A stretch of DNA of 64,000 nucleotides from Leidyana gryllorum EB-2025a (Eukaryota > Protista > Apicomplexa), in the NCBI GenBank assembly GCA_048772705.1, contig JBLWGC010000036.1:1-64000 (forward strand). Direction: 5' to 3'. The notes under the pieces were generated by a model that was not told the origin of the DNA, did no database searches, and saw only the letters and a program-made list of their open reading frames with translations. Positions 808-50,236 of the stretch are shown piece after piece (the first letter of the stretch is position 1; every line of letters begins with the position of its first letter). The translations under genes and the position numbers were made by a program.

Positions 808-3254
808 TCATCTAAACACAGTTTCATCGTCAACACTTTTTCCACTCACCACAGGACTGCCATCGAGAGTTGATGGCCGGAATATATCGACCCTTTCCCT
901 ATCGTCGCTTAGCTTATTCGCCTTGCCCCATTTACTCAGCGCAAGCAGAGCAGCCTGCTGTACCGCGGGAGAGGTGGAACGACAGTAGACGCGCAACGAA
1001 TGCTGTCTCCAAGTGTCCGGAAACTGAGCTTTCCATTTATACGGCAGCTTCAATCGTGCCGCGTCAATGTCATTGGGTTCGTAGAACTGTACACTCTCCC
1101 AGGGAGAGTGTTCGTCGGTACCATAGTCATGGTGAGACACTGCGTCAGTAGTCAGTTAGTCGATTTGAGATTGAGCCCCCTACCATTGATTATCAGATCG
1201 TCAGCATTCAATTTACAGTGCTCAGCTCGCGCGGCAATCTGCTGTGCAATATCTTTCTGCTTTATCGTCGCGAGTTCTTCTTCGGTCTGCGCAACGTATT
1301 CTCCCACAAAGTGATAGAGCGTTCTGTGATCTAATCGGTCCATTATACGTTTGGCTCTGCGTATGAGAGATGAATGGAAACGTCTGCCGGGAGGAAAGAG
1401 ACATACCGCTGCAGTCGGGACCAGTTGTCGTGACCCAATACTGTTTCCTCAGCATCACCGTGTGTTCTATGTAAACACTTAATCCACTGAGCGCAAAGGG
1501 CAATCTGCCTTATCAAAGACATCCAGCGAGCGGAAACGTACACTCAACAGTCTGTCATCGAGGGTGATGTACTCCTCGACATCGTCGAGAGCCTCTCTCA
1601 TCCGGAAGATGGGCTGGACTTCGTCAAGGATATCGCCAACCTGAGAGGACGAGACTCTGTTTGAGAGGTCACAGCCTCCCCCCTCCTCACCATGTAGTTG
1701 ACAGCATCTGTCTTGCGATGGCGATATACTTTGCCAAACATTGTATATCGAGCGTGATAAAATTGGAAAACTTCAGCGTGCTCCTTGAACGAGAAGACTA
1801 TGCTGCCCCCGACTACATTGGAAAAGTCCATCATACGACTCGGGTCGAATTGGGGGAGCCCCTGTGCAATAGCAGCATCTCTCCGCAGATAGTCGAACCG
1901 ATCGACATCACATCCACATTGCTTATTTGCTGTCAGAGACTGTAAGAGGGCGCGAAGCGATGCTAGAATTCACTCACCAACGATTTGGGTGGCTATCGAT
2001 TCGAGCTGTGCGTAGGCGTCATTTTGCCAATCAAAAGATTTAGCATACACCCGATCATTCCACTGCGAGCCGACCATCGCGGCTTTGATCAATTCAGCTG
2101 TTCCCAGCTCATCCATCAAAATCCCCAGACGGCTTCCGCTCGCATCCAGCATATAATCAAAGAGTTTGAGTGACATGCTTTCATGACACCACTTGGGGTC
2201 TGGACACGGAGGATGAGCAACATAAACTGTTATGCTCACCAATCTTGCGAGCAAAGTGACTCTCAAATGTATGACTAAACGGACCGTGTCCAAGATCGTG
2301 ACACAGTCCAGCAATGCATATGGATTGGCTCAACGCTTGAGTATACCGATGGTTCAGATTCACACCGATCTTCCTATCAAGTCGTGCGCGTCCGCGGTGG
2401 TGAGCCCTTTTTGCGCCAGCGACTTACCCAGCCAGACTCTCGAACCAGGCTTTCGCCAAGTGACCCACTCCAAGACTGTGCTCGAACCGGGTGTGTTGGG
2501 CATTGGGAAAGACATAGTGAGAGAGACCCAATTGTTTGAGATCTGACGAGCGCGGAAGAGTCTTTGCATCGAGAACGGGAAGAAAAGCTTCCCAAGCCTG
2601 CCTCACCCCGTAAACGTTGCATCGGCTTTTGATCAATGACTGCCTCATACACTGGTCGGGGGAACAATAAGATCCCGTGAATCTGGGAGGAGAGCATCGC
2701 TAAGTTGGAGAGGGCCAGCAGCGGAGGCATACCTTATCCGCGCATCTTCGCATTTCTTTATCGGTTCTGAACTTCCGCTGACTGCACACACGCGTGTTGG
2801 CAACAACAGATTGGAGGGACAATCTGTCTTGGAGCCGAAGGTGTCCGAGGGGGCCCTCCGAATTGCGGGACAAGGCGAATTCCAAGTCCGGGAGATCCTC
2901 AATGCCAAGCGACTCCAATATCGGGAAGAGGTGGGACACCCCCGCTTCAGCCATAGCCTCCTCGAAGGGATTGTTTGATGCCACCTTTTTAGTTAGTCGT
3001 TGACGATCAATCACGGATAACTGGCATGGGCCCGGCGAAGAGTGGGAGAAATCAACTCCCGATAGGATATGTCGTGACCGGAGAGGTCCCTTCAGCAATA
3101 CTTGCAATGGAGGAGTCTGGCTTCACGTAAGATGGCACATGTACTTACTTTGGGACTTGTTCAGCGGAGAGAGTCCATCCCCGATCAAAGTATACTGCCA
3201 TTCTGGCTGGAGTCTCTCCCTGACACCACCGAAAGTCAGACGCTGGTCACTCAT
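808..3254 (-). CDS. SAMHD1-like HD-domain dNTP triphosphohydrolase with a putative N-terminal SAM-like segment (multi-exon)
   Basis: Spliced exons give DKIHG..IDQKPMQRLRDLKQLG..VFPNAQHTRFEHSLGVGHLA, IAGLCHDLGHGPFSHTFE, WCHESMS, NKQCGCDVDRFDYLRRD, HARYTMFGKVYRH, DYG..SPWESVQFY..LRVYCR, collinear with SAMHD1-family motifs; GT-AG introns restore the frame. Confidence 0.9.
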
Positions 3255-3278
3255 AGACAAAAAAAGTTGACAAGTGCC

Positions 3279-6200
3279 ATGTCTGAGCTGGAGGATGGTC
3301 AGCAGTCTAAGCGAAGGAGGTCCGAAGCTGACGACTTGAGCGCTTTCCTGCCCAGCAATATTCCCGAGGAACAGCCGGCGGGAGCCAGTGTGACTGGCCC
3401 GTCGGAGGGTCCTCCAACTAGTCTTAGCCACGTGGCAGCAGGTGTATCTCTGAGCACGACCACTCTGAACTTAGAGTCTGAGGTTCTTGAGCTGCGGAGA
3501 GTATTGATAAGTCGCGATTCCGAGCTTCGTGAGTCACAATGGGCCCGAGAGCAAGCCGAAGGCGCCGCTCGAAGGTGTCAACAAGAGTTGCACGGTCTCC
3601 AAGCGAAAGACCAACGGCAGACAGAAGAGATAAATTCATTGCGGACACAATTGGGTCAGCGTGAAGAGCAACGCCGCTCTGAGGCTCAGCGAAGAGAGGA
3701 GTTGGAGTCGCAACTCAACCTCGAGCGCGATACCAACGCAACTCGCATGAGTGCCTTTCGGAATGAAATCGAAGCCTTGCAGGAGGAAGTTTCTCGACAA
3801 GCGGCCCAATTTGCCCGAGAATCTGCCTCAGTGGTCAGTGACATGGCCATGGCGGAGAAGAAATTCATGAGTCTCCAATTTGCCCACACTCAATTGAAGG
3901 CAGCCTATGACGAAACACTGGAACAAAATCAAGCATTGCTGAAACAAGTCACCGAGCTACGAGCAAATGTTGCAGACCGCGAAACCGCCCTCCAGACTCA
4001 GATCGCTGCCTTGACGCAGGCCAAAGGAGAATGCTCCCGTCTACAAGAAAAGGTCGAGCAGCTTCAAATGGAGCTAAACAATCTCAAGCGCGAAACACAA
4101 CCATATTCCCGAAGAAGCGTCCTTCTGTCTGATGCCCTCCGTACAGCTGAATCAAGTCGCTCGGAGATGCAGTCTCTCCGCGAACGCTGTGAGTATCTCG
4201 AAGCGCAGAACGAAGCATTCCGACAACGGTACCGTCATGCCTCCACCAATGATGAACAATTGGTAAGTCAGCGGGAAGGGATGATGTGTCATCATTTGTG
4301 CCAACACAGTTAACCGAGGTGGAGGAGGCGCGGACGCGCATTGTGTCTCTCGAGAGGTCCCTGGCTGTGAGCAACAAGGCGGTGGAGGCTCTTGAGGAGC
4401 GGGCAAAGGCACTCGAGGGCGAGCTGACACAGTCCAAGCATGAAGCAGCTCGCTTCAAGCGCTTCAAAGAGACCCTTGAGGACCAAGCGACTGGCTTGTT
4501 GCGGAACGCTCAAGGCTTAGGTGGCAGGAATCCTCGAGACCTCTTACAGGAATTAGTGTAAGTTCCATTATCGCTGCTATCTATGTACACCACGTCCGTC
4601 GCTGCTTCCAGAGAGATGAAAGAGGCTTTGAGAGTGACCGAAGAGAGGTCAACTTTGGCCTTGGAAAAACAAGGCCGCGAGCTGACCGAAAAGATGAAAG
4701 AGATGGAGGAGACCGTTGCCGAGCACAATAGCCACAAAACGGCCATTATTCAACAGCTTTCTGAACAACAAGCCGTGCTGCGAACTCGATGGTAGGCAAA
4801 GGAGGCAGAGACAACTATCCACTCAACCCCTCTCCCCCCCGTCAGTGAGGAGTATATGCAACGAATCGGCGCTCTGGAAGCGGATTTGGCGCGTCAATCG
4901 GCATCCGAGAGACGTGTCACCACCGAGCTGCAAAACGCCCAGGAGGAACGAAACCGCCTGCAGCAGAGGGTAAGTCGAAGAGTGTTTGCCGCACAGCGCT
5001 GTCCACAACCGCTTTTCCATTCTCCAGTTGGAGTCGGCGAGTAATCAGGTGAAGCAGTCCCACGCAGCGACTCAAGAGGCACAGTCGGAGAAGTTACAAC
5101 TGGCAATGGTCGTTGCAATGAAGGACTCACAGATCAGCTTCCTTCAATCTCAGTACGACAAGGAGGCCGAGAGGTCGTCTCGTTTACTCAAGGAGATGGA
5201 AGAACTCACGGCCGGACGACAGAGTGTGCAGATGGAGTTAGCTGAGACTCGCAGACAGATTCAAGAGGCTATAAGTCGCCGCGAGGCAGTGGAGGTTGAG
5301 CTCACACAAAAGAAGACAGAGCTGAATCAACTTGAGTCCGCCAAGAGCTTCGTTGAACAGGAAGCTCGAGCTCTCCGGGAGGAGTTGGTCTCGGAAGGGA
5401 AGCGCTATAATGAAGGCCGACGTGTGCTGGACGAACAAGCGGTCAAACTGGAGGGATGGCTGCGTCAGACGCAGGGCGAGAATGCCACTCTGCGAGAGAC
5501 ATTGAAGGAGAGAGACATGGACTTGAACCGCCGCAACGAGACTCTGCAATTGCGTGAAATGGAGTTGCACAAGGCAACACAGACCTTAGAGGTGCTCAAG
5601 AATGAGCTCCAAGCAGCTCAAGCGAAACGCACAGAGTTGGAAAGGGACTTCTCCGTCCTTCAGGCCGAGACGCAGGAGAAGGAACGACAAATGCTCAATC
5701 TGCGCAAAGATTTCCACAGCTTATATGAACTGAGTAATATTGCCAACAATTCGGGCAACAATACTCCCCGGACGTCTGAAGCTGGCTTAACACCCGCCTC
5801 GTCGAAACGCCCATCATTGGCACCTATTTCGACGATTATAGATCCTGTGAATCCGGCCACAGCTGCAACGGCAGGCCAGAAACTCATTGAGTCTCTCCGG
5901 TAAGTCTTGCGACCCTCTCTCTCACCTCATTTCCCCCTCCCTCTCTCTCAACAGCGACCAAATCGACGATCGGGATCGGCGCATCAAACAGCTGGAAGAT
6001 GCCTATAAAGAGTTGGAGAACGAGGCTGAACAAGTCTTGAAACCACAGATCGATCGACTAAAGGAGGAGCTCGAGACTGCTGAGAAGAAGCTCGAAGTTG
6101 CCCACGGCTCTGTGGCCGAACTCGAGAGACAGTTGCAGCAGGAGGTAAGACTGAGGTGCAAATCTGTCTGTCTCGCACACGCGTGTCTTTAGGGCAAGAA

Positions 6201-7778
6201 TAGCCACGCGTTACGCGCTCGCGTCGAAGAGGTCGAGGAACTCAAGACAGCCGCCGAGACGCGGGTACTCGAAGTGGCCAGTAAACTACAAGAAGCCCAT
6301 CAGAAACTCGAGGAGATTGCCAACAATACACGTCGTACCGAAGAGGAACTTGAAACCGCCAGAAACAGCTATAGAGCTGTTGTGCAAGCGCACGCTGCCG
6401 ATATGCAACAAGTTGAATCCACCAATACCGAGAGAGCCCGTTTGCTGGAGTCTATCGAAGAGGCCCGTAAGGATGTCGACAACATCAACAGAGAAAGAGC
6501 CAAAGAAAGGTGAGGACTCAATCAAGTTGGCCTCCATCCAACTCTGACTACCACACACTTCAGAGCGGAGTTTGAGAGGTTTATGTCCAAAGCTCGATCT
6601 GACCACTCTGCCCTTCAAAAGGCCTACGATGACCTTCAGCAGGAGTTCAATACTTTGGCTCCCAAGTTGCTAATGTAAGACCCACATCGCGTACCCCTCC
6701 ATCTCCCACTCTCTCTCTCACAGGGCCGAACAGTCAACAGAGTCGAACACCACTGAGACTGTGCTGCAAATTCAGTGCAGTCAGGCGATCAGACAACGAG
6801 ACTCGCTGGCGGTAAGTACCCTATTTGAGACAGTGCCTTACAAAACCTTCCGAATACTTGCAGACGGAGGTGGAGGCGCTGAAAATTGATGCAGCGCAAC
6901 TGAGAGCCCGCAACAGTGCCGTTGAAGCCACTCTGGAGCAGCTGAGGGGACAGCTGAACGAGTCTAACAAGAAGATGGGAGAGGTGAGTCATTGATTGCC
7001 CAACTGTGACATTTGACGGCACACCTTCTGCAGTTACGCCGCAAGATGGCCGCCCAAGCCTCTATTTACGCCCCGGAGGTGCTGTTGGAACGCGCGACTC
7101 TCCAAAAACAGGTGGAGGAGGTGGAAGCTGAGAAGGTGGCCCTCGAAGAAAAGTATTCGAAACTATTAGCCGACCTGAGTGAGGAGAGAGCCGCACAGAA
7201 ACCGATCCGAACAGAGTAAGCGTTTCTCTCTCTCTCTTCTGAACACGAATGTGCACAGATTGACCCAGAAGGAGTCAGAACTGAAAATCATGAAGGTTCA
7301 GGTTCTCAAACTTCAGAAGGGAATGGATATGCTGAACGAGCAATACCAAATTGCTTTGGCTTCACACAAATTGCCGGCTGCTCCTCCGGAGAAACTCAAA
7401 ATACCGGATCAAGCTGTAAAGGATCTAACGACCATTCTGCGACAAAGTATTCGATATGCGCTATTGGGCAGCTTGATGATCCGAGTACGACCAGGCGCTC
7501 TGGAGAAAGGCGCTCCTTCCATCTTGGCCCCATCAGTATGCGACGCGAGTCGCAAGCGGCCCCGTAGCAGCGATGACGACTCTGATCTGCTTAACCCAAC
7601 GCCCAAGCAACTGGTCAGACGGCCAGACCTCCCACATACGGGAGGCGACTCGAACACCGCCTCAGACCGATCGCGACTTCAAACGCCGTCTCCCCCCAAA
7701 GATGGCGCAACGTCGGGAGGGGTGGGCTCCCAAACCGTGGCAGCTCCACTTCAAGGGGCCTCTCATTCAAGTGCCTAA
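3279..7778 (+). CDS. Long coiled-coil protein, probable Tpr/Mlp1-type nuclear basket nucleoporin (multi-exon)
   Basis: Over 1000 aa of heptad-rich sequence across about 11 exons; ARNSYRAVVQAHAADMQQV (~6358-6415) resembles Tpr AQNKYERELMLHAADVEAL; disordered C-tail with RKRPR NLS-like motif. Confidence 0.6.
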
Positions 7779-7862
7779 ATCTTGGTGTGAGTCAGTGATC
7801 TTTCATCGCGAATGTTGCGTCTCCACGATGAGATTGTGTGGAGCACGGAGACAGAGGAACGA

Positions 7863-7888
7863 ACACACACACAGACACACACACACAC
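7863..7888. repeat. Interrupted (CA)n microsatellite between convergent genes
   Basis: acacacacacagacacacacacacac. Confidence 0.85.
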
Positions 7889-7992
7889 CGCCACCACCCC
7901 AGCACGAGAAGTGACAGCGTCCACCCCTGCTGCCGTGAGGTCGAGTCTTGCCTCCTTTGCCGCCTCCACGAGAGCTCGCCGCCGCTACTCAA

Positions 7993-10900
7993 CTATTTCC
8001 CGCCTTTGCCCTTTCGTTTCTGTTCCCGATCTATCTTATCTTGCTTGGCTTTGCGCTTGTTGTCCATGGCCCTGGCGAAAGAGAAGACGTCCTTAACAAA
8101 TTTGGCTGGTTTGAGCTTGGCAACGGACTGATCAGTCTCGCCGAACAACTTGGCGACTGTGACGAACAGGTCTTTGACGTTCTTGATTGCTTCCCGCAAC
8201 TGAGGAATCTCGTTCGCTTTATCTCGCATGAAATCTCCTATGATCCGCTCTAAAGGATCTTTGTCAGCCGATGATGCGTTCGTTTTCGACGCTGTGTCCT
8301 GTGCCTGCTTCAATCTGGTCATCCCCGCTTCCAAGGCATTGATATTCGTATCTATCGCATCAACATCGACCTTGTCGTCCACCGCTTCACATGCCACCAT
8401 TTCCTCCCGCGCCTTCAAACACTCTCGATCATGATCCCACAGAAGCTAAAACACCAATAAACCGAAACCACGATATACACACACACAACCTACATCGATC
8501 ATGTAATCCGTGAAGGTGCGAATGGGAGGGGTGGTGGTTTTGATCGTATCAAGCTTCTCCAGGACATTCAACTTGAACCCTGGAATATCCGATTGATTCA
8601 GAGTATTGCCAACTTTGAGAATAGCTAGTAGTAGTGATCGGAACTTCTCTGAGTCTCTAATTGACTTCAATGCAGCCGTCAATCGATCCGTCGGCATTTG
8701 TATGTCCACCACCGCCGAGTCAAAAGCAGCAATGTATTGAGCAGCCGCCAAACGCTGCCGCATCAAGGGTACACCAAGCATAGCCGCCACAAACTGCTCT
8801 GGAATATCAATCTTTGTCAAGTCACCCCCGGCCTTGATGTATTCCTGCACCGCCACCTCATCCTCTTTCTCTGGCAGAATCTTCTCCAAGACACCCATAT
8901 CCTCAACACTAAGTTTCTGCAAACCCACTTGTCCCCATCTGCTGCCCACACGCTACACTCACAGTCGTATCCAAATCCAAGACTGCATCCCTCAGTTCCA
9001 AGAAAGTCATCTTCTTGAACTTATTCAAAGCAATGTTCATATTGTAGTGACGCTTGCCATCAGGGATAACACGGATAGCCTGAAACACACACACACAATT
9101 CTACTCGTCCTGTGCAAGTCTCCCAACCTACCGTTACTTTTGCTGCCTTCTTCTTCGCCTGGTCTCCATCTTCAGCCTTTTTGGGCTGAACGACAAATGT
9201 CTCCTGGATATCAGACAATGGTAAGTTCGAGAAGTACTCATGGAAAGCATTCTGGAACACTGTCCCCGAAGGGTCATCAATCGGATCCCAAGCCAATCTC
9301 TTCGGCTTCGCCTTCACCGGTGCCCCTCCTCCCTTCGATGCCCCCTTCTTGGGTGGTGGTCCTTTCTTCGGGGGAGGTGGCTTGCCTCCAGGACCTTTGC
9401 CGGGGGGCCCGGGTTTCTTCCCTGGTGCCCCAGGGGCGCCCGCTTTGGGAGGAGGAGGCTTCGCTCCTGGAGCGGCTACCGCCTTAGCTGCTCCTGTGCC
9501 AGCTGCTGGAGCTATGCTGGCTTTCACGCCGAAACTCATTGGCGCATTCTTCTCTTCAATCTCGAGTGTCACGTCGTCGTCCACCATGTCAGAGGCGGCT
9601 AACTGAGTAAGGACATCCGGGTGCAGCAGTTCCATCACGCCACTGCCAAGCAGTGTTTGCACATCTGAATACTCGAGATTCTACCGCATCGTCTTGCCAG
9701 GGCCTACCACTATCAGACAATTTCCCACCGGCTATACCGGGAGGCATGCTCACAGCGACAGCTCCAGAGGCAGTTTGTGTCAACTTAGGGCCACCAGCCG
9801 GTCCTTGAGCGTTCGCAGGCGCTCCGGGAGGCCCACCACCTCCTCCGGTATCGCCACCCGGCAAATGAAAGGCGATTGGTTGATTCGCTACCATCGGTAA
9901 CCCTCCATATGTTGTTGTGCCTTCTGAGGCTTCCGGGACTGGGGGTGGGGGGGGAGGCTGGCTTCCGCCTTGAGCACCAAGCATGTTCAGCCCTCCACCT
10001 GGCATACCACCGCCCATCATTCCTCCACCTAACATACCGCCGCCCCCCATCATCCCTCCACCTGGCATACCGCCACCCCCCATCATCCCTCCGCCCAGCA
10101 TACCGCCACCCCCCATCATTCCGCCCCCCATCATTCCTCCACCTGGCATACCGCCACCCGGCATACCACCGCCCCCCATCATTCCTCGACCTCCCATACC
10201 CCCGCCCATTCCAGGGCCACCTCGACCCCCCGCGGCTCCAAAACCCGCGCCCATTCCACCAAAGCCGGTCGGTCCAGTGTCGTTCAAGTATGGCAACCAA
10301 ATTCCTACGTCCTGCGCTGACAGTGTCGGAAGACCCACCTGGCCTGGACCGGCCCCTCGCCCTCCAGTTCCTTGTATTGACATTTGTGGAACGAACGACC
10401 CACCAACTTGAGGCATCTGGCCAAGTGGACCTCCACCAAAGGCATGAGTCTGGGCAAATTGCTGACCCTGGTTCAGGGCGCCGCTCAGTGTTGGGATAGC
10501 CTGATTCATTGCTGGGATAGGAGGTGCTTGCTGATTGATCTGAGGTTGCGGAAATGGAAAAGGCTACTAAACAGGGCTCGGAGGCACGTGGTTAATAGCA
10601 TGCAAACACAGGGAAGCGAAAAGTGGTAGAGAGCCGGAGGGCAGCAAAAGCATGGCTGGCCTCGGCTAAGTTTGTGTGCCGCACACAAGGTGGGCACGCC
10701 GCACACTTGGTGGGCCATTTGGGAAGGTCTTGGGACTGGGAAAGGGGTGTCTACGGTGTGTATGAGCCGTCCAGGCGACATGACGAGGCAGAGGGACCCT
10801 ACCGTGCGTAGACTCTTTTTGGTAGACCATAGACCATAAACGATATAGCTGGACTGACTAACGCCGTTTCACCTCATTCCCCCCTCAATGGGATCTTACA

Positions 10901-23295: not shown

Positions 23296-24413
23296 TCAGG
23301 ACTGGTTGTCCTGCTCCTCCAGTTCCTGCTCGCTGTAGTGTACCAGATGAACTATCTCCTCCAGAGCTATTCTTATTTCGTTATCGGTCTCCAATAGGTG
23401 CCAAGTTCTGATCACCTCATAACAATTCAGCTTCCGCGCCGCTTCCCTGCCCAACCAAATGTTCATCGTATCATCTCACTTTCCACCTACCGAGCCTCTT
23501 TGTGTCTGAAGAGCGCAGTGAAGCACTCTGCAACTAATCGGCGGGACAATAGATCTGATACAGGCCCAAAGCAGCCCTCCTGCCACACTACTTGGTGAAC
23601 GCCGCGGAGATCATCACTTACCGTTATTCCCGCACTAACAACCTGGTTGTTAGACTCATCTTGCCCATCTAAAATGGTCTTCTGCAGAGCCAACCGGGTT
23701 TCAGCCGTCGGGTATACTATGCGCCCTAAGGTCTCGAGTAAAGGCTTCTGCTGGAAGTCGAAGGCTGGCACTAACTCTGGATCACAGCACACATTCTTCA
23801 CTGCACGCAAAATGATGGGTCGTCGATGCATAAGCTTGGTCTGTAAGCTGAAGGTCTCCCAGAAAGTTCGGTCCAAATCCACCAGCCACCTCCGCCCTGC
23901 CTCAATAGTCGTTAGGTTCGTGAGGATGTGCCCGATGTGCTCGCATTTGTCTTTGTGCTCGGTTCGGGGCACCGCCTCGACCCGATCACCATAATAACCC
24001 AGAATTCTCCATAGGAACAGTTCTTTGCTCAACAGCGTTTTCAAGCCTGCTTCCTGCCGGGTTACATTCGCCAGAACCATATATAACAAGCGTTCGATTG
24101 TTGCTGGACCCAACAGATGCTTTTCGGAAAGCGCTTCACAGAGTGATCCGATGAATTTTGATGAGCCCATAGCCTCCGCTAGAGAATCAACAGCACTCAG
24201 GTTCACCAAACAGCTCAGACCGTTCCAAGCCGCTTCTTCCTCATCATTAATACCAATTGTCAATAGTGCTTCGCTCAATTCCTTGATGTGGTTCACTGCC
24301 ATAGCTTGGAAGGACTCGTCTACCGAAAGACCCAAGGTGATCTTAGCCGCCTCTTTGCGCACATCTCCACTGCCGGTGCGTAGAAAGGCGCATAAGTCTT
24401 CCAACTCTCCCAT
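23296..24413 (-). CDS. HGH1: HGH1-like ARM-repeat chaperone of eEF2 (2 exons)
   Basis: LSCLVNLS, MVLANVTR, EHIGHILTNLTTIEAGRRW, RR..ILRAVKNVC, and after a 44-nt intron EAREAARKLNCYEVIRTWHLLETD..LEEIVHLV, matching the Hgh1 (DUF383/384) pattern. Confidence 0.8.
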
Positions 24414-24440
24414 ATCTTGCAAAAAAATCAGCCAAGCGTG

Positions 24441-26272: not shown

Positions 26273-29742
<3,470 letters not shown>

Positions 29743-32962: not shown

Positions 32963-33154
32963 TGGATTTTTATACCAAACAAAAAGCCTTAGGAACAGGT
33001 CATCTGGCCGGAACCGCCTTTGGACCCCTCTCCCCTCATTGTGGGATTGAGATTGCCTCTATTACTTTGAACGAACAGCTTAGTGAATGTGGGATGGGAT
33101 TGTAAGCACTTGCTTTCCGCTCCCCGTGAGTATGTGTAGCGACCTAATTTTCAC

Positions 33155-46508: not shown

Positions 46509-48626
46509 ATGCTGAATCGTCAGGAGGGGAGTGTATCCCCACGCTTCTGGAGCCCAGCATACGTTACACCCGTACTGGAGAGATTTCGTGCACGGCTGTC
46601 AGAGCACTCCCTCAGGTCCTGCTGCAGCCTCCCGTCCCTCTCCACGCCCCCTGTGAGCCCTGTGATCGACGCTGTTCCGTGGGTCAGGGGGCCACGCTTT
46701 CGACCCCGTGACTTCACCCCCTCATCGAACATGTCTAGCGCCGATTTTCCCCTCACCTGCCGTGAAGCGCCCATTTTTGACTTGGTCGACTGCCATGCAG
46801 CTCACCAGCCCTCCAGTCCCAATCTGTATCCTTCACCCCCACTGACATTGAGCGATCACTTTGTGGGAGCCTTGTCTCCTCTCACGGTCCCGGTCAGACG
46901 CTGGGGTTTATCTAACGGATCTTACTCACTATCTATACGGTCTGGTTTGCTAAAGTGGCTCGACAAGCGTTTGACGTTCCTGCCTCCCATGGACGTGCAG
47001 CGCACGAGTGCTTCACCCCTTCAGTTGGTGCGACAGATATATATTGACCTGGCTGCCGTGAGAATACCATCCTACGCAAGGCCCTGTAGCACTGAACTTC
47101 CTTCTCCAATATACAGGTCACCATACAAAAGGCTTGGAGAGGGTTCCAGGGACGTAAATTGGCAGAATGGTTACGCAGTGAGGTATTGATTCACACAGTA
47201 TCGGTCGTGTTTTCATTCATAGTGCTTTCGATCTATAGGAGTCATCCAAACAAATATTACACCAGGCGGCCACCAAGATTCAAGCTGCCTGGCGGGGCTT
47301 TCAGGGGCGCATGCACGCAGAGCTGCGAATACAAGTGAAGATGCACCTAGTCTGCCGTGATGTAGCGGCGGTAAGTGCCGTTTCACCTCTCAGACTCCAC
47401 CTGTTGTCGACCTAGAGACGTATACAACGCGCCTGGCGAAGCTGGCGCGCGCGGGAACAGAGTAAAATACTTCGAGTTGTGAGTTCAAGAGATAGATCAT
47501 TGCCCCGAACGATCAGTATCGCGCTGTCAGGCCGGAGTAGTGAGCCGAATGCGACATTTGTCTGCGGCACTGATACAACGAGTTTGGAGAGGATCGCGAG
47601 TGAGGAGGATCGTTGATGAGGAGTGGGACTACTGGGTAGTCAAGTGGATTTGGGACCCTCCTGGGAAGGTTGTAGAAGTAGTCGGTAACTTCACCGACGA
47701 ACCTTGGAATCAGCGAATCCGAATGCATTGGTGTCCACGTCGCCGATGTTACGTGGCGAAGCTACCCCGAAAACGGGGCAGATACGAGATGAAATATGCC
47801 GTCAACGGCAGATTTGTCTGTTGCGGAGCTGGTACTGTAGTTGAGGTGAGGCCAGACTCAAGGCCTGGTATCGCTACAAATTCACAGGACGGTCACGGCT
47901 ACTACAATAATGTGGTTGACGTGCTCGAAGTTCCAGCCGTATCCCCCTGTAAGTTGATTGTTGTGCTCAATCTGTGGTTGCTATATAAGACTGTGTCTGT
48001 TTTGAGGCCATCTGACTTGATTGCTATGTAGCAGAGTCGACATGGTGCTCTCGATAATGTGTGCTATCCTCAATGGTGTCTCCACAAAGTGTGCGGCGGC
48101 CCAGTGCCGTTCCCGCTTGTTCACTCAAATGGCTTTTCGCGCTTCTTGAGGACGATGACGTTAACTTTTGTGTCTCGCAGTTGTCCGCTGTCGCCAGATC
48201 GTCAATTCATTCCACAAACAACGGGCATTGGAATCTTCGACGAATGGTGAGTCCAGCGGCCCCAGCAAAGAGACTTCTGTGATGGAGAACGCTTCTGTTG
48301 GGACGACGGACGAGTACTACAATGGAAGAAATCGGCACAATGATCAAGACCCTCCCCCTTCTCTGAACACCATCTCCGATAATCGTCAAACCCTACCCCC
48401 TCTGCGTCATAAAGGGGTCGAAGAAGGATCGTCCACCCATCAGCCCTCGAGCCAAATTCGAACGCCTACTAGTGAGGAGGAAGATGAAGCGACCCCACCC
48501 CCACCTATACTTCGTCCGAGGTCTCCCAGTCGAACACCACGAAGGAAGCGCCGAAGAAAAAGGGTATTGAAGCCGCCGACAGGAAGGTCGACCGCGATAA
48601 TAACATCTTCCCCTTTGTGCATGTAG
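46509..48626 (+). CDS. IQ-motif protein with an AMPK-beta-like glycogen-binding CBM48 domain (multi-exon)
   Basis: IQAAWRG, IQRAWRS, IQRVWRG followed by VKWIW..GKVVEVVGNFT..W..GRYEMKYAVNG..G..NNVV. Confidence 0.75.
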
Positions 48627-50198: not shown

Positions 50199-50236
50199 AG
50201 GTGGGGAGGGCGGGTGGAGTGCCTAAAAAAATCAGT

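Follow-up and report, generated by a model that had tools for sequence, protein, structure and literature searches.

The window analyzed here is a 64,000-nt stretch (contig C36:1-64000) of the Leidyana gryllorum assembly, which comprises 15,504,140 bases in 237 contigs (15.5 Mb); it is gene dense, with 52% GC and many introns of 37-49 nt. A SAMHD1-like gene on the minus strand and a gene for a Tpr-like coiled-coil protein on the plus strand stand head to head in it, and the spacer between their start codons (spacer 1, table 1) is so short that positions 3252-3281 hold it entire: CAT AGAC AAAAAAA GTTGACAAGTGCC ATG. Two other divergent pairs, HGH1 with an Rpp14-like gene and MAT1 with PHF5A, face each other across comparable spacers (spacers 2 and 3), each likewise with an A7 run. 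Runs of at least seven A occupy only four loci in the window, both strands taken together: three lie in spacers 1-3, and the fourth is an A8 upstream of RUVBL1. Patterns were counted over the whole assembly, each against its reversed-pattern control, and about 139 kb of the genome was inspected as individual sequence beyond these counts. In the database searches exons were queried one by one, those of the Rpp14-like gene being joined for local translation only. Coding-potential models (codon, Markov) were too weak to decide between gene models at spacer 1, a Viterbi segmentation gave usable results at strand level only, and an enumeration of divergent genes by ORF pairs was swamped by antisense ORFs.

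Table 1. Compact divergent spacers of the window, their flanking gene parts, and A:T tracts
Feature	Position	Strand	Description
Spacer 1	3255..3278		24-nt non-coding head-to-head intergenic spacer, AGAC-A7-GTTGACAAGTGCC
A7:T7 tract, conserved core of spacer 1	3259..3265		Conserved block CATAGAC(G)A7GTTGA; tract identical in L015
SAMHD1-like exon 1	3149..3254	-	ATG 3254-3252; peptide kept in P0002 at 70% identity
SAMHD1-like intron 1	3101-3148	-	48 nt, GTAAGT...CAAG; exon 2 begins at 3100
Tpr-like coiled-coil gene, first exon	3279..4313	+	ATG 3279; 71% identical to the relative's N-terminus
Spacer 2	24414..24440		27 nt; HGH1 (-, ATG 24413) / Rpp14-like (+, predicted ATG 24441); A7 24421-24427
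Spacer 3	50199..50236		38 nt; MAT1 (-, ATG 50198) / PHF5A (+, ATG 50237); A7 50225-50231
A8 tract	27177..27184	+	32 nt upstream of RUVBL1 ATG 27217; TIP49 domain from residue 25

The gene models on either side of spacer 1 find their support in a related species. An exhaustive HMMER search with the SAMHD1-like exon 2 ORF as query returned a protein (P0002) that is 67% identical and aligned from the first residue of exon 2, and its N-terminus (MNPLTFGGHRERLHPYWQYPLIGDGLS) matches the exon 1 peptide (MSDQRLTFGGVRERLQPEWQYTLIGDGLS), so that the in-frame splicing of the first exon through GTAAGT...CAAG, proposed in a sequence-only reading of this DNA, is supported. P0002 is encoded on L015, a 4,358-nt contig from the Logan assembly of ERR10900107, where the same two genes again lie head to head; the A7-bearing 24-nt spacer between divergent ATGs at 3254 and 3279, as that reading had described it, is thus borne out both by the sequence and by the same pair in the relative. 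The Tpr-like N-terminus (MSELEDGQQSKRRRS) is 71% identical to that of the relative (MAEEDGQQQSKRRRS), with the alignment running from residue 4-5. In Pfam the Tpr-like protein had coiled-coil-type matches only, and the SAMHD1-like and Rpp14-like exon pieces had none. Intron 1 of the SAMHD1-like gene ends in an unusual AAG acceptor. In L015 (398-997), the stretch corresponding to this intron is without an in-frame stop, and a prokaryote-style gene call (P0002) therefore reads straight through it.

Spacer 1 might nonetheless be an artifact of wrong gene models, the true starts being a SAMHD1-like MAEAG at ~2955, an alternative raised along with the sequence-only reading, or an upstream in-frame Tpr-like ATG at 3132. 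Both frames are open over 3132-3254, where codon and Markov statistics cannot separate them, and the intron after exon 1 needs the unusual acceptor. Yet P0002 keeps both the peptide of exon 1 and those residues of exon 2 that precede MAEAG, and L015 keeps both Met codons, so that the MAEAG start is rejected. Moreover, the two spacers differ by 7 nt, which is not a multiple of three; this breaks any plus-strand frame through the spacer, and spacer 1 is thus non-coding. We consider wrong models barely credible.

The L015 spacer measures 31 nt (AGACG-AAAAAAA-GTTGAAGTACGAGCGTGCA) and keeps the CATAGAC(G)AAAAAAAGTTGA of spacer 1: CATAGAC, A7, and GTTGA are identical except for one inserted G, and the 12-mer A7GTTGA is identical. 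The GTGC before the Tpr-like ATG is also kept, and the two spacers differ in length entirely through what separates GTTGA from GTGC. In L015 this A7 is the sole run of at least six A in the 4.4-kb contig. Neutral divergence between the window and L015 is large, with 27 of 80 fourfold sites identical (34%, where chance gives ~25-30%) and 88 of 189 third positions of identical codons; at 47% neutral identity, 12 consecutive identities have a probability of ~1e-4. CATAGAC(G)A7GTTGA is thus conserved above the neutral level, as a conserved non-coding element would be, at one locus. At this one orthologous locus, that is direct evidence of purifying selection on the A7 and its flanks and, since they were kept while neutral sites stand near chance, the tract is most likely the selected core of a shared promoter. 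For spacers 2 and 3, searches for orthologs found nothing close: for MAT1 only a relative at 29% was retrieved, whose upstream spacer measures 385 nt and whose neighbor is another gene, for HGH1 only an EukProt protein at 46% that lacks a recorded contig, a shorter HGH1 query had no match, and neither had two metagenome scans.

Homology at HGH1, MAT1, and PHF5A backs the limits predicted for spacers 2 and 3. In HGH1 homology sets in at residue 6, and the ORF has its first ATG at 24413; MAT1 and P0001 align from the first residue of each, with the RING of MAT1 beginning at residue 5; exon 2 of PHF5A begins at position 6-7 of the Pfam PHF5 profile, so that a 13-nt exon 1 (four codons, MAKH) supplies the start. 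Exon 1 of the Rpp14-like gene is predicted just from a strong 37-nt GTGAGT...CAG intron and frame continuity, and spacer 2 would at worst measure 48 nt, were the start the second in-frame ATG. Spacer 2 reads ATCTTGC A7 TCAGCCAAGCGTG, and spacer 3 consists of 26 G-rich nucleotides, A7, and TCAGT. Read in the sense direction of MAT1, the G-rich tract of spacer 3, GGTGGGGAGGGCGGGTGGAG (50199-50224), is a C-rich run that separates T7 from the ATG. An 11-mer common to spacers 2 and 3, AAAAAAATCAG, was considered as a motif and dismissed as coincidence, the genome holding 5 copies. That both of these pairs, too, carry exactly seven A's on the plus strand had been pointed out from the letters alone. 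The description is true of the sequence, but the number is meaningless as a rule, tracts of 7-11 being common among the genome-wide matches listed and A5-A6 occurring in comparable spacers too, and the shared plus strand is chance: genome-wide, forward matches number 257 and reverse ones 274.

The A8 upstream of RUVBL1 has a different setting. It lies within the open C-terminal frame of an upstream same-strand gene (Spc24-like; window 27124-27216), whose TAG stop stands just 4 nt before the RUVBL1 ATG, and it codes for His-Lys-Lys-Asn in the Spc24-like C-terminal tail. The putative promoter-proximal element of RUVBL1 would thus be embedded in coding sequence.

In number, A7 runs are at chance level: the window has 5 matches against 6.4 expected, and the genome has 789 exact runs against ~770 expected from base composition. 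Their placement departs from chance. Between start codons pointing outward, CAT-N0-30-A7-N0-30-ATG has 531 matches (control, 99) and the tighter CAT-N0-14-A7-N0-14-ATG has 228 (control, 23), about a quarter of the matches listed for the latter being one tRNA-array repeat, without which the excess is still ~7-fold. The stop-flanked negative control, TRA-N0-30-A7-N0-30-TYA, shows no excess genome-wide (633 matches; control, 739). The suspicion of the sequence-only reading that the tract recurs in short start-flanked spacers is thereby upheld, at 10-fold over the reversed control and with no excess in stop-flanked contexts, and long A:T tracts are accordingly specific to gene 5' ends. For exact A5 in the short start-flanked frame the excess is 2.4-fold (818 matches; control, 338) versus ~10-fold for A7, and thus grows with run length. 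Before a single ATG, both orientations are enriched alike (A7-N0-30-ATG, 884 matches, control 419; T7-N0-30-ATG, 1038, control 395), which argues for a role at the DNA rather than the RNA level. Enrichment in start-flanked contexts with no excess in stop-flanked ones is what would be expected of poly(dA:dT) promoter elements (perfect A:T homopolymers of at least 5 bp), and the placement of the tracts, including the near-equal forward and reverse counts given above, is independent of orientation.

Beyond placement the tracts have little in common. Among the genome-wide matches listed, tract and ATG are anywhere from 0 to 30 nt apart, no geometry being fixed, and neither a common sequence after the run nor a shared flanking motif was found. 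Run lengths in short spacers span 5-11 (7-11 among the matches listed, A5-A6 in the sampled sequence); in the sampled sequence A6 also occurs in an intron and in coding sequence. The tracts of spacers 1-3 stand in sequence that is not otherwise AT-rich. In the first 100 of the 789 exact A7 runs, the base on the 5' side is C in 61, G in 25, and T in 14, where ~34% C is expected among non-A bases; C is thus over-represented, and the preferred form is C-A7. A runs also occur in tRNA arrays (L012 on contig C3, at 5274-5279, 6570-6577, and 8050-8056), whose repeat CATACGATGTTGAGAACAAAAAAATGCGATG is found on many contigs. One A6 there lies 20 nt upstream of tRNA-Ala(AGC), between divergent tRNA-Pro and tRNA-Ala genes, and tRNA-Leu(CAA) genes are followed after 13-18 nt by an A7 and an A8, which are on the sense strand and hence are not T-run terminators; such runs possibly represent a Pol III upstream element, or else they are simply part of the array repeat unit. 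Longer intergenic regions have microsatellite-like (CA)n/(TG)n stretches (window 7780-7900; C2 21790-21830).

The A:T tract is not universal in short spacers. In the ~139-kb sample it is absent from two apparent 27-nt divergent spacers of contig C2 (29891-29917, which adjoins a gene that we take to be centrin-like, and 46907-46933), and no A run was found within 60 nt upstream of three candidates that, from their N-termini, are presumably EF-2, aldolase, and PGAM. Other divergent spacers of the sample measure ~190-300 nt and have A5/T5 runs only.

Upstream start codons bear on how long the leaders of these genes could be. In 9 short-spacer genes, whose start codons, like those of 19 other genes, were partly assigned by ORF logic, sense ATGs between -3 and -100 number 5 against 13.7 expected (P=0.007), and in the 19 others 16 against 28.9; between -101 and -200 neither group is depleted (13 vs 13.9 and 29 vs 29.4). 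Within the bin from -41 to -100, which lies in the partner CDS, 3 were observed against ~7 expected from a coding-antisense baseline of ~0.013 ATG per nt (P~0.08), which is only suggestive. Depletion as far as about -100 weakly favors leaders that would reach into the partner gene over leaderless mRNAs, and so leans toward the second option of the sequence-only reading, in which the 5' ends overlap the adjoining CDS; leaders of some tens of nucleotides, often extending into the partner, would fit the pattern. ATGs do stand at -50 and -56 for HGH1 and at -26 for the SAMHD1-like gene; if upstream ATGs are not tolerated, these would cap the respective leaders. The last of them stems from the Tpr-like start context, CCATGT, whose minus strand also contains an ATG, 26 nt ahead of the SAMHD1-like start codon (window 3254-3280). 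This upstream ATG opens a uORF of 9 codons whose TGA overlaps the main ATG (cTATGAgt), and it is absent in L015. From the end of the tract to the start codon the distance is 4-32 nt for the seven window start codons, an A/T element thus standing within ~30 nt of the ATG. No canonical TATA box (TATAWAWR ~25-35 bp upstream of the start site) was found in spacers 1-3, and a TATA-like role for the tract itself is excluded by geometry: it lies 4-13 nt from several ATGs, so that a start 25-30 bp beyond it would fall inside the CDS.

What, then, might the tract do? We think it probable, with moderate confidence, that the A7:T7 run is the selected, orientation-independent core, acting at the DNA level, of a promoter shared by both genes of a compact divergent pair. 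Such a tract would keep the start region free of nucleosomes and/or seed the initiation machinery, much like poly(dA:dT) and the degenerate A/T-rich core elements of yeast, Giardia, and microsporidia. Two initiation complexes do not fit into 24-38 bp, and the working promoter would therefore have to extend into both coding regions. Transcription would most likely begin no more than a few tens of nucleotides from the tract, on either strand, which would result in short leaders and, in many pairs, in mRNAs overlapping head to head over the partner's start region. Several observations count against this reading: 7 bp is short for intrinsic nucleosome exclusion, the tract has neither a fixed spacing to either ATG nor a shared flanking motif, and the 27-nt spacers of C2, as well as the EF-2, aldolase, and PGAM candidates, do without it.

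A tentative alternative, to which we give clearly less weight, takes the tract as an initiator of the Giardia and microsporidian type, Pol II starting on both strands at or next to it inside the spacer and producing near-leaderless mRNAs with leaders below ~20 nt. The closeness of the tract to the ATGs (0-30 nt) speaks for it, as does the fact that the first ATG after the tract is the start codon in 7/7 window cases; the -26 ATG of the SAMHD1-like gene and the -50/-56 ATGs of HGH1 would burden longer leaders, and the C found 5' of A7 in 61 of the first 100 runs provides a pyrimidine-purine step. There is also a precedent in E. cuniculi, where an AAATTT-like A/T-rich signal lies just upstream of start codons, 5'UTRs of <7 nt were found by RACE, and a head-to-head pair of ribosomal-protein genes has a 35-bp spacer holding the signal, which the authors propose to serve both genes (Peyretaillade et al. 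2009, PMC2803860). However, the depletion of upstream ATGs extends to about -100 in short-spacer genes as well as in other genes, the relative lacks the -26 ATG, and no conserved initiator-like sequence follows the run. Spacers of 8-11 nt among the matches listed would, if the gene pairs are real, leave no room for two internal start sites, and in C. parvum, the nearest studied compact relative, a preprint describes extensive UTR overlap between neighboring genes on either strand (bioRxiv 10.1101/2025.01.17.633476). Slightly more doubtful still is the full claim that the 24-38 bp of a spacer around one short A:T tract make up a complete bidirectional Pol II promoter, firing from inside and yielding two near-leaderless mRNAs; if true, this would be the first such case in Apicomplexa, convergent with microsporidia and Giardia, in a GC-balanced, intron-rich genome.

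The tract could instead work in RNA, as a poly(A) leader in one transcript and poly(U) in that of its partner, promoting the translation of short-leader mRNAs. Its position immediately upstream of start codons would suit such a role, but a strand-specific signal would prefer one orientation, and A and T are enriched about equally before the ATG, which makes this improbable. Still less likely, in our judgment, is that the tract has no function and is a slippage-prone homopolymer accumulating wherever coding constraint is absent. The count of exact A7 runs does equal the expectation from base composition, and A6 turns up in intron and coding sequence as well; against this, tract length and flanks are kept across species whose synonymous sites have diverged to near chance, stop-flanked contexts have no excess, enrichment rises with run length, and the rest of the spacers is not AT-rich. 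A DNA-level promoter core thus remains the reading that we prefer.

Comparable signals are known elsewhere, and the likening to microsporidia and Giardia put forward from the sequence alone proved apt (PMC2803860, PMC1885649). As in microsporidia, the genome is hyper-compact and the ATG is preceded, at a distance of a few to ~30 nt, by an A/T-rich signal, and the C-rich stretch between the T run of spacer 3 and the MAT1 ATG recalls the order of A/T signal followed by a CCC motif. In contrast, the predicted element here is a pure homopolymer (A5-A11) rather than AAATTT, no general CCC motif accompanies it (in E. cuniculi, CCC/GGG), the L. gryllorum genome is 52% GC and intron-rich, and the depletion of upstream ATGs hints at longer leaders than those shown by RACE in E. 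cuniculi. In Giardia lamblia, transcription runs both ways from degenerate A/T-rich core promoter elements (Teodorovic et al. 2007, PMC1885649). Giardia and L. gryllorum are alike in having short A/T-rich elements near the ATG and a compact protist genome that lacks canonical TATA spacing; however, the second direction there yields mostly sterile antisense RNA, whereas here both sides bear protein-coding genes, and bidirectional activity is experimental there while we infer it here from sequence.

A T5...A5 pair in the window (32963-32990, plus strand: CAT-tgga-TTTTT-ataccaaac-AAAAA), adjoining the start of a 722-codon minus-strand gene, resembles the T-tract/A-tract layout of yeast nucleosome-free regions. 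Poly(dA:dT) tracts reportedly lie in the nucleosome-depleted promoter regions of yeast type, where either orientation works and specificity rises with tract length. Both systems thus have homopolymeric A:T tracts that are enriched at promoters (here predicted ones), in both orientations and with greater specificity at greater length. In yeast, divergent promoters take up at least ~150 bp, and transcription starts where the nucleosome-free region ends, whereas the whole intergenic DNA here is 24-38 bp and the tract ~7 bp. To our knowledge, apicomplexan core promoters are poorly defined and those of gregarines unstudied. A gregarine genome paper contains no discussion of promoter or intergenic signals (PMC9250747). 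C. parvum, the closest well-studied compact relative, is alike in that UTR overlap is a likely consequence of such short spacers; a term search of the preprint found no mention of an A-rich element, a bidirectional promoter, or a head-to-head spacer (bioRxiv 10.1101/2025.01.17.633476). Given the microsporidian, Giardia, and yeast precedents, we would class the candidate element as one of a known kind, A/T promoter signals of this sort being already familiar, in a lineage where they were not previously described.

For L. gryllorum, the tract marks some 150 or more ultra-short head-to-head spacers and so offers a concrete and testable putative minimal promoter element. It is also a practical aid for calling start codons in a gene-dense, intron-rich genome, analogous signals having been used to re-annotate E. 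cuniculi. These pairs provide a natural system for asking how 24-38 bp initiates two genes, whether through overlapping 5' ends or through near-leaderless mRNAs, and would represent another independent case of promoter miniaturization under genome compaction.
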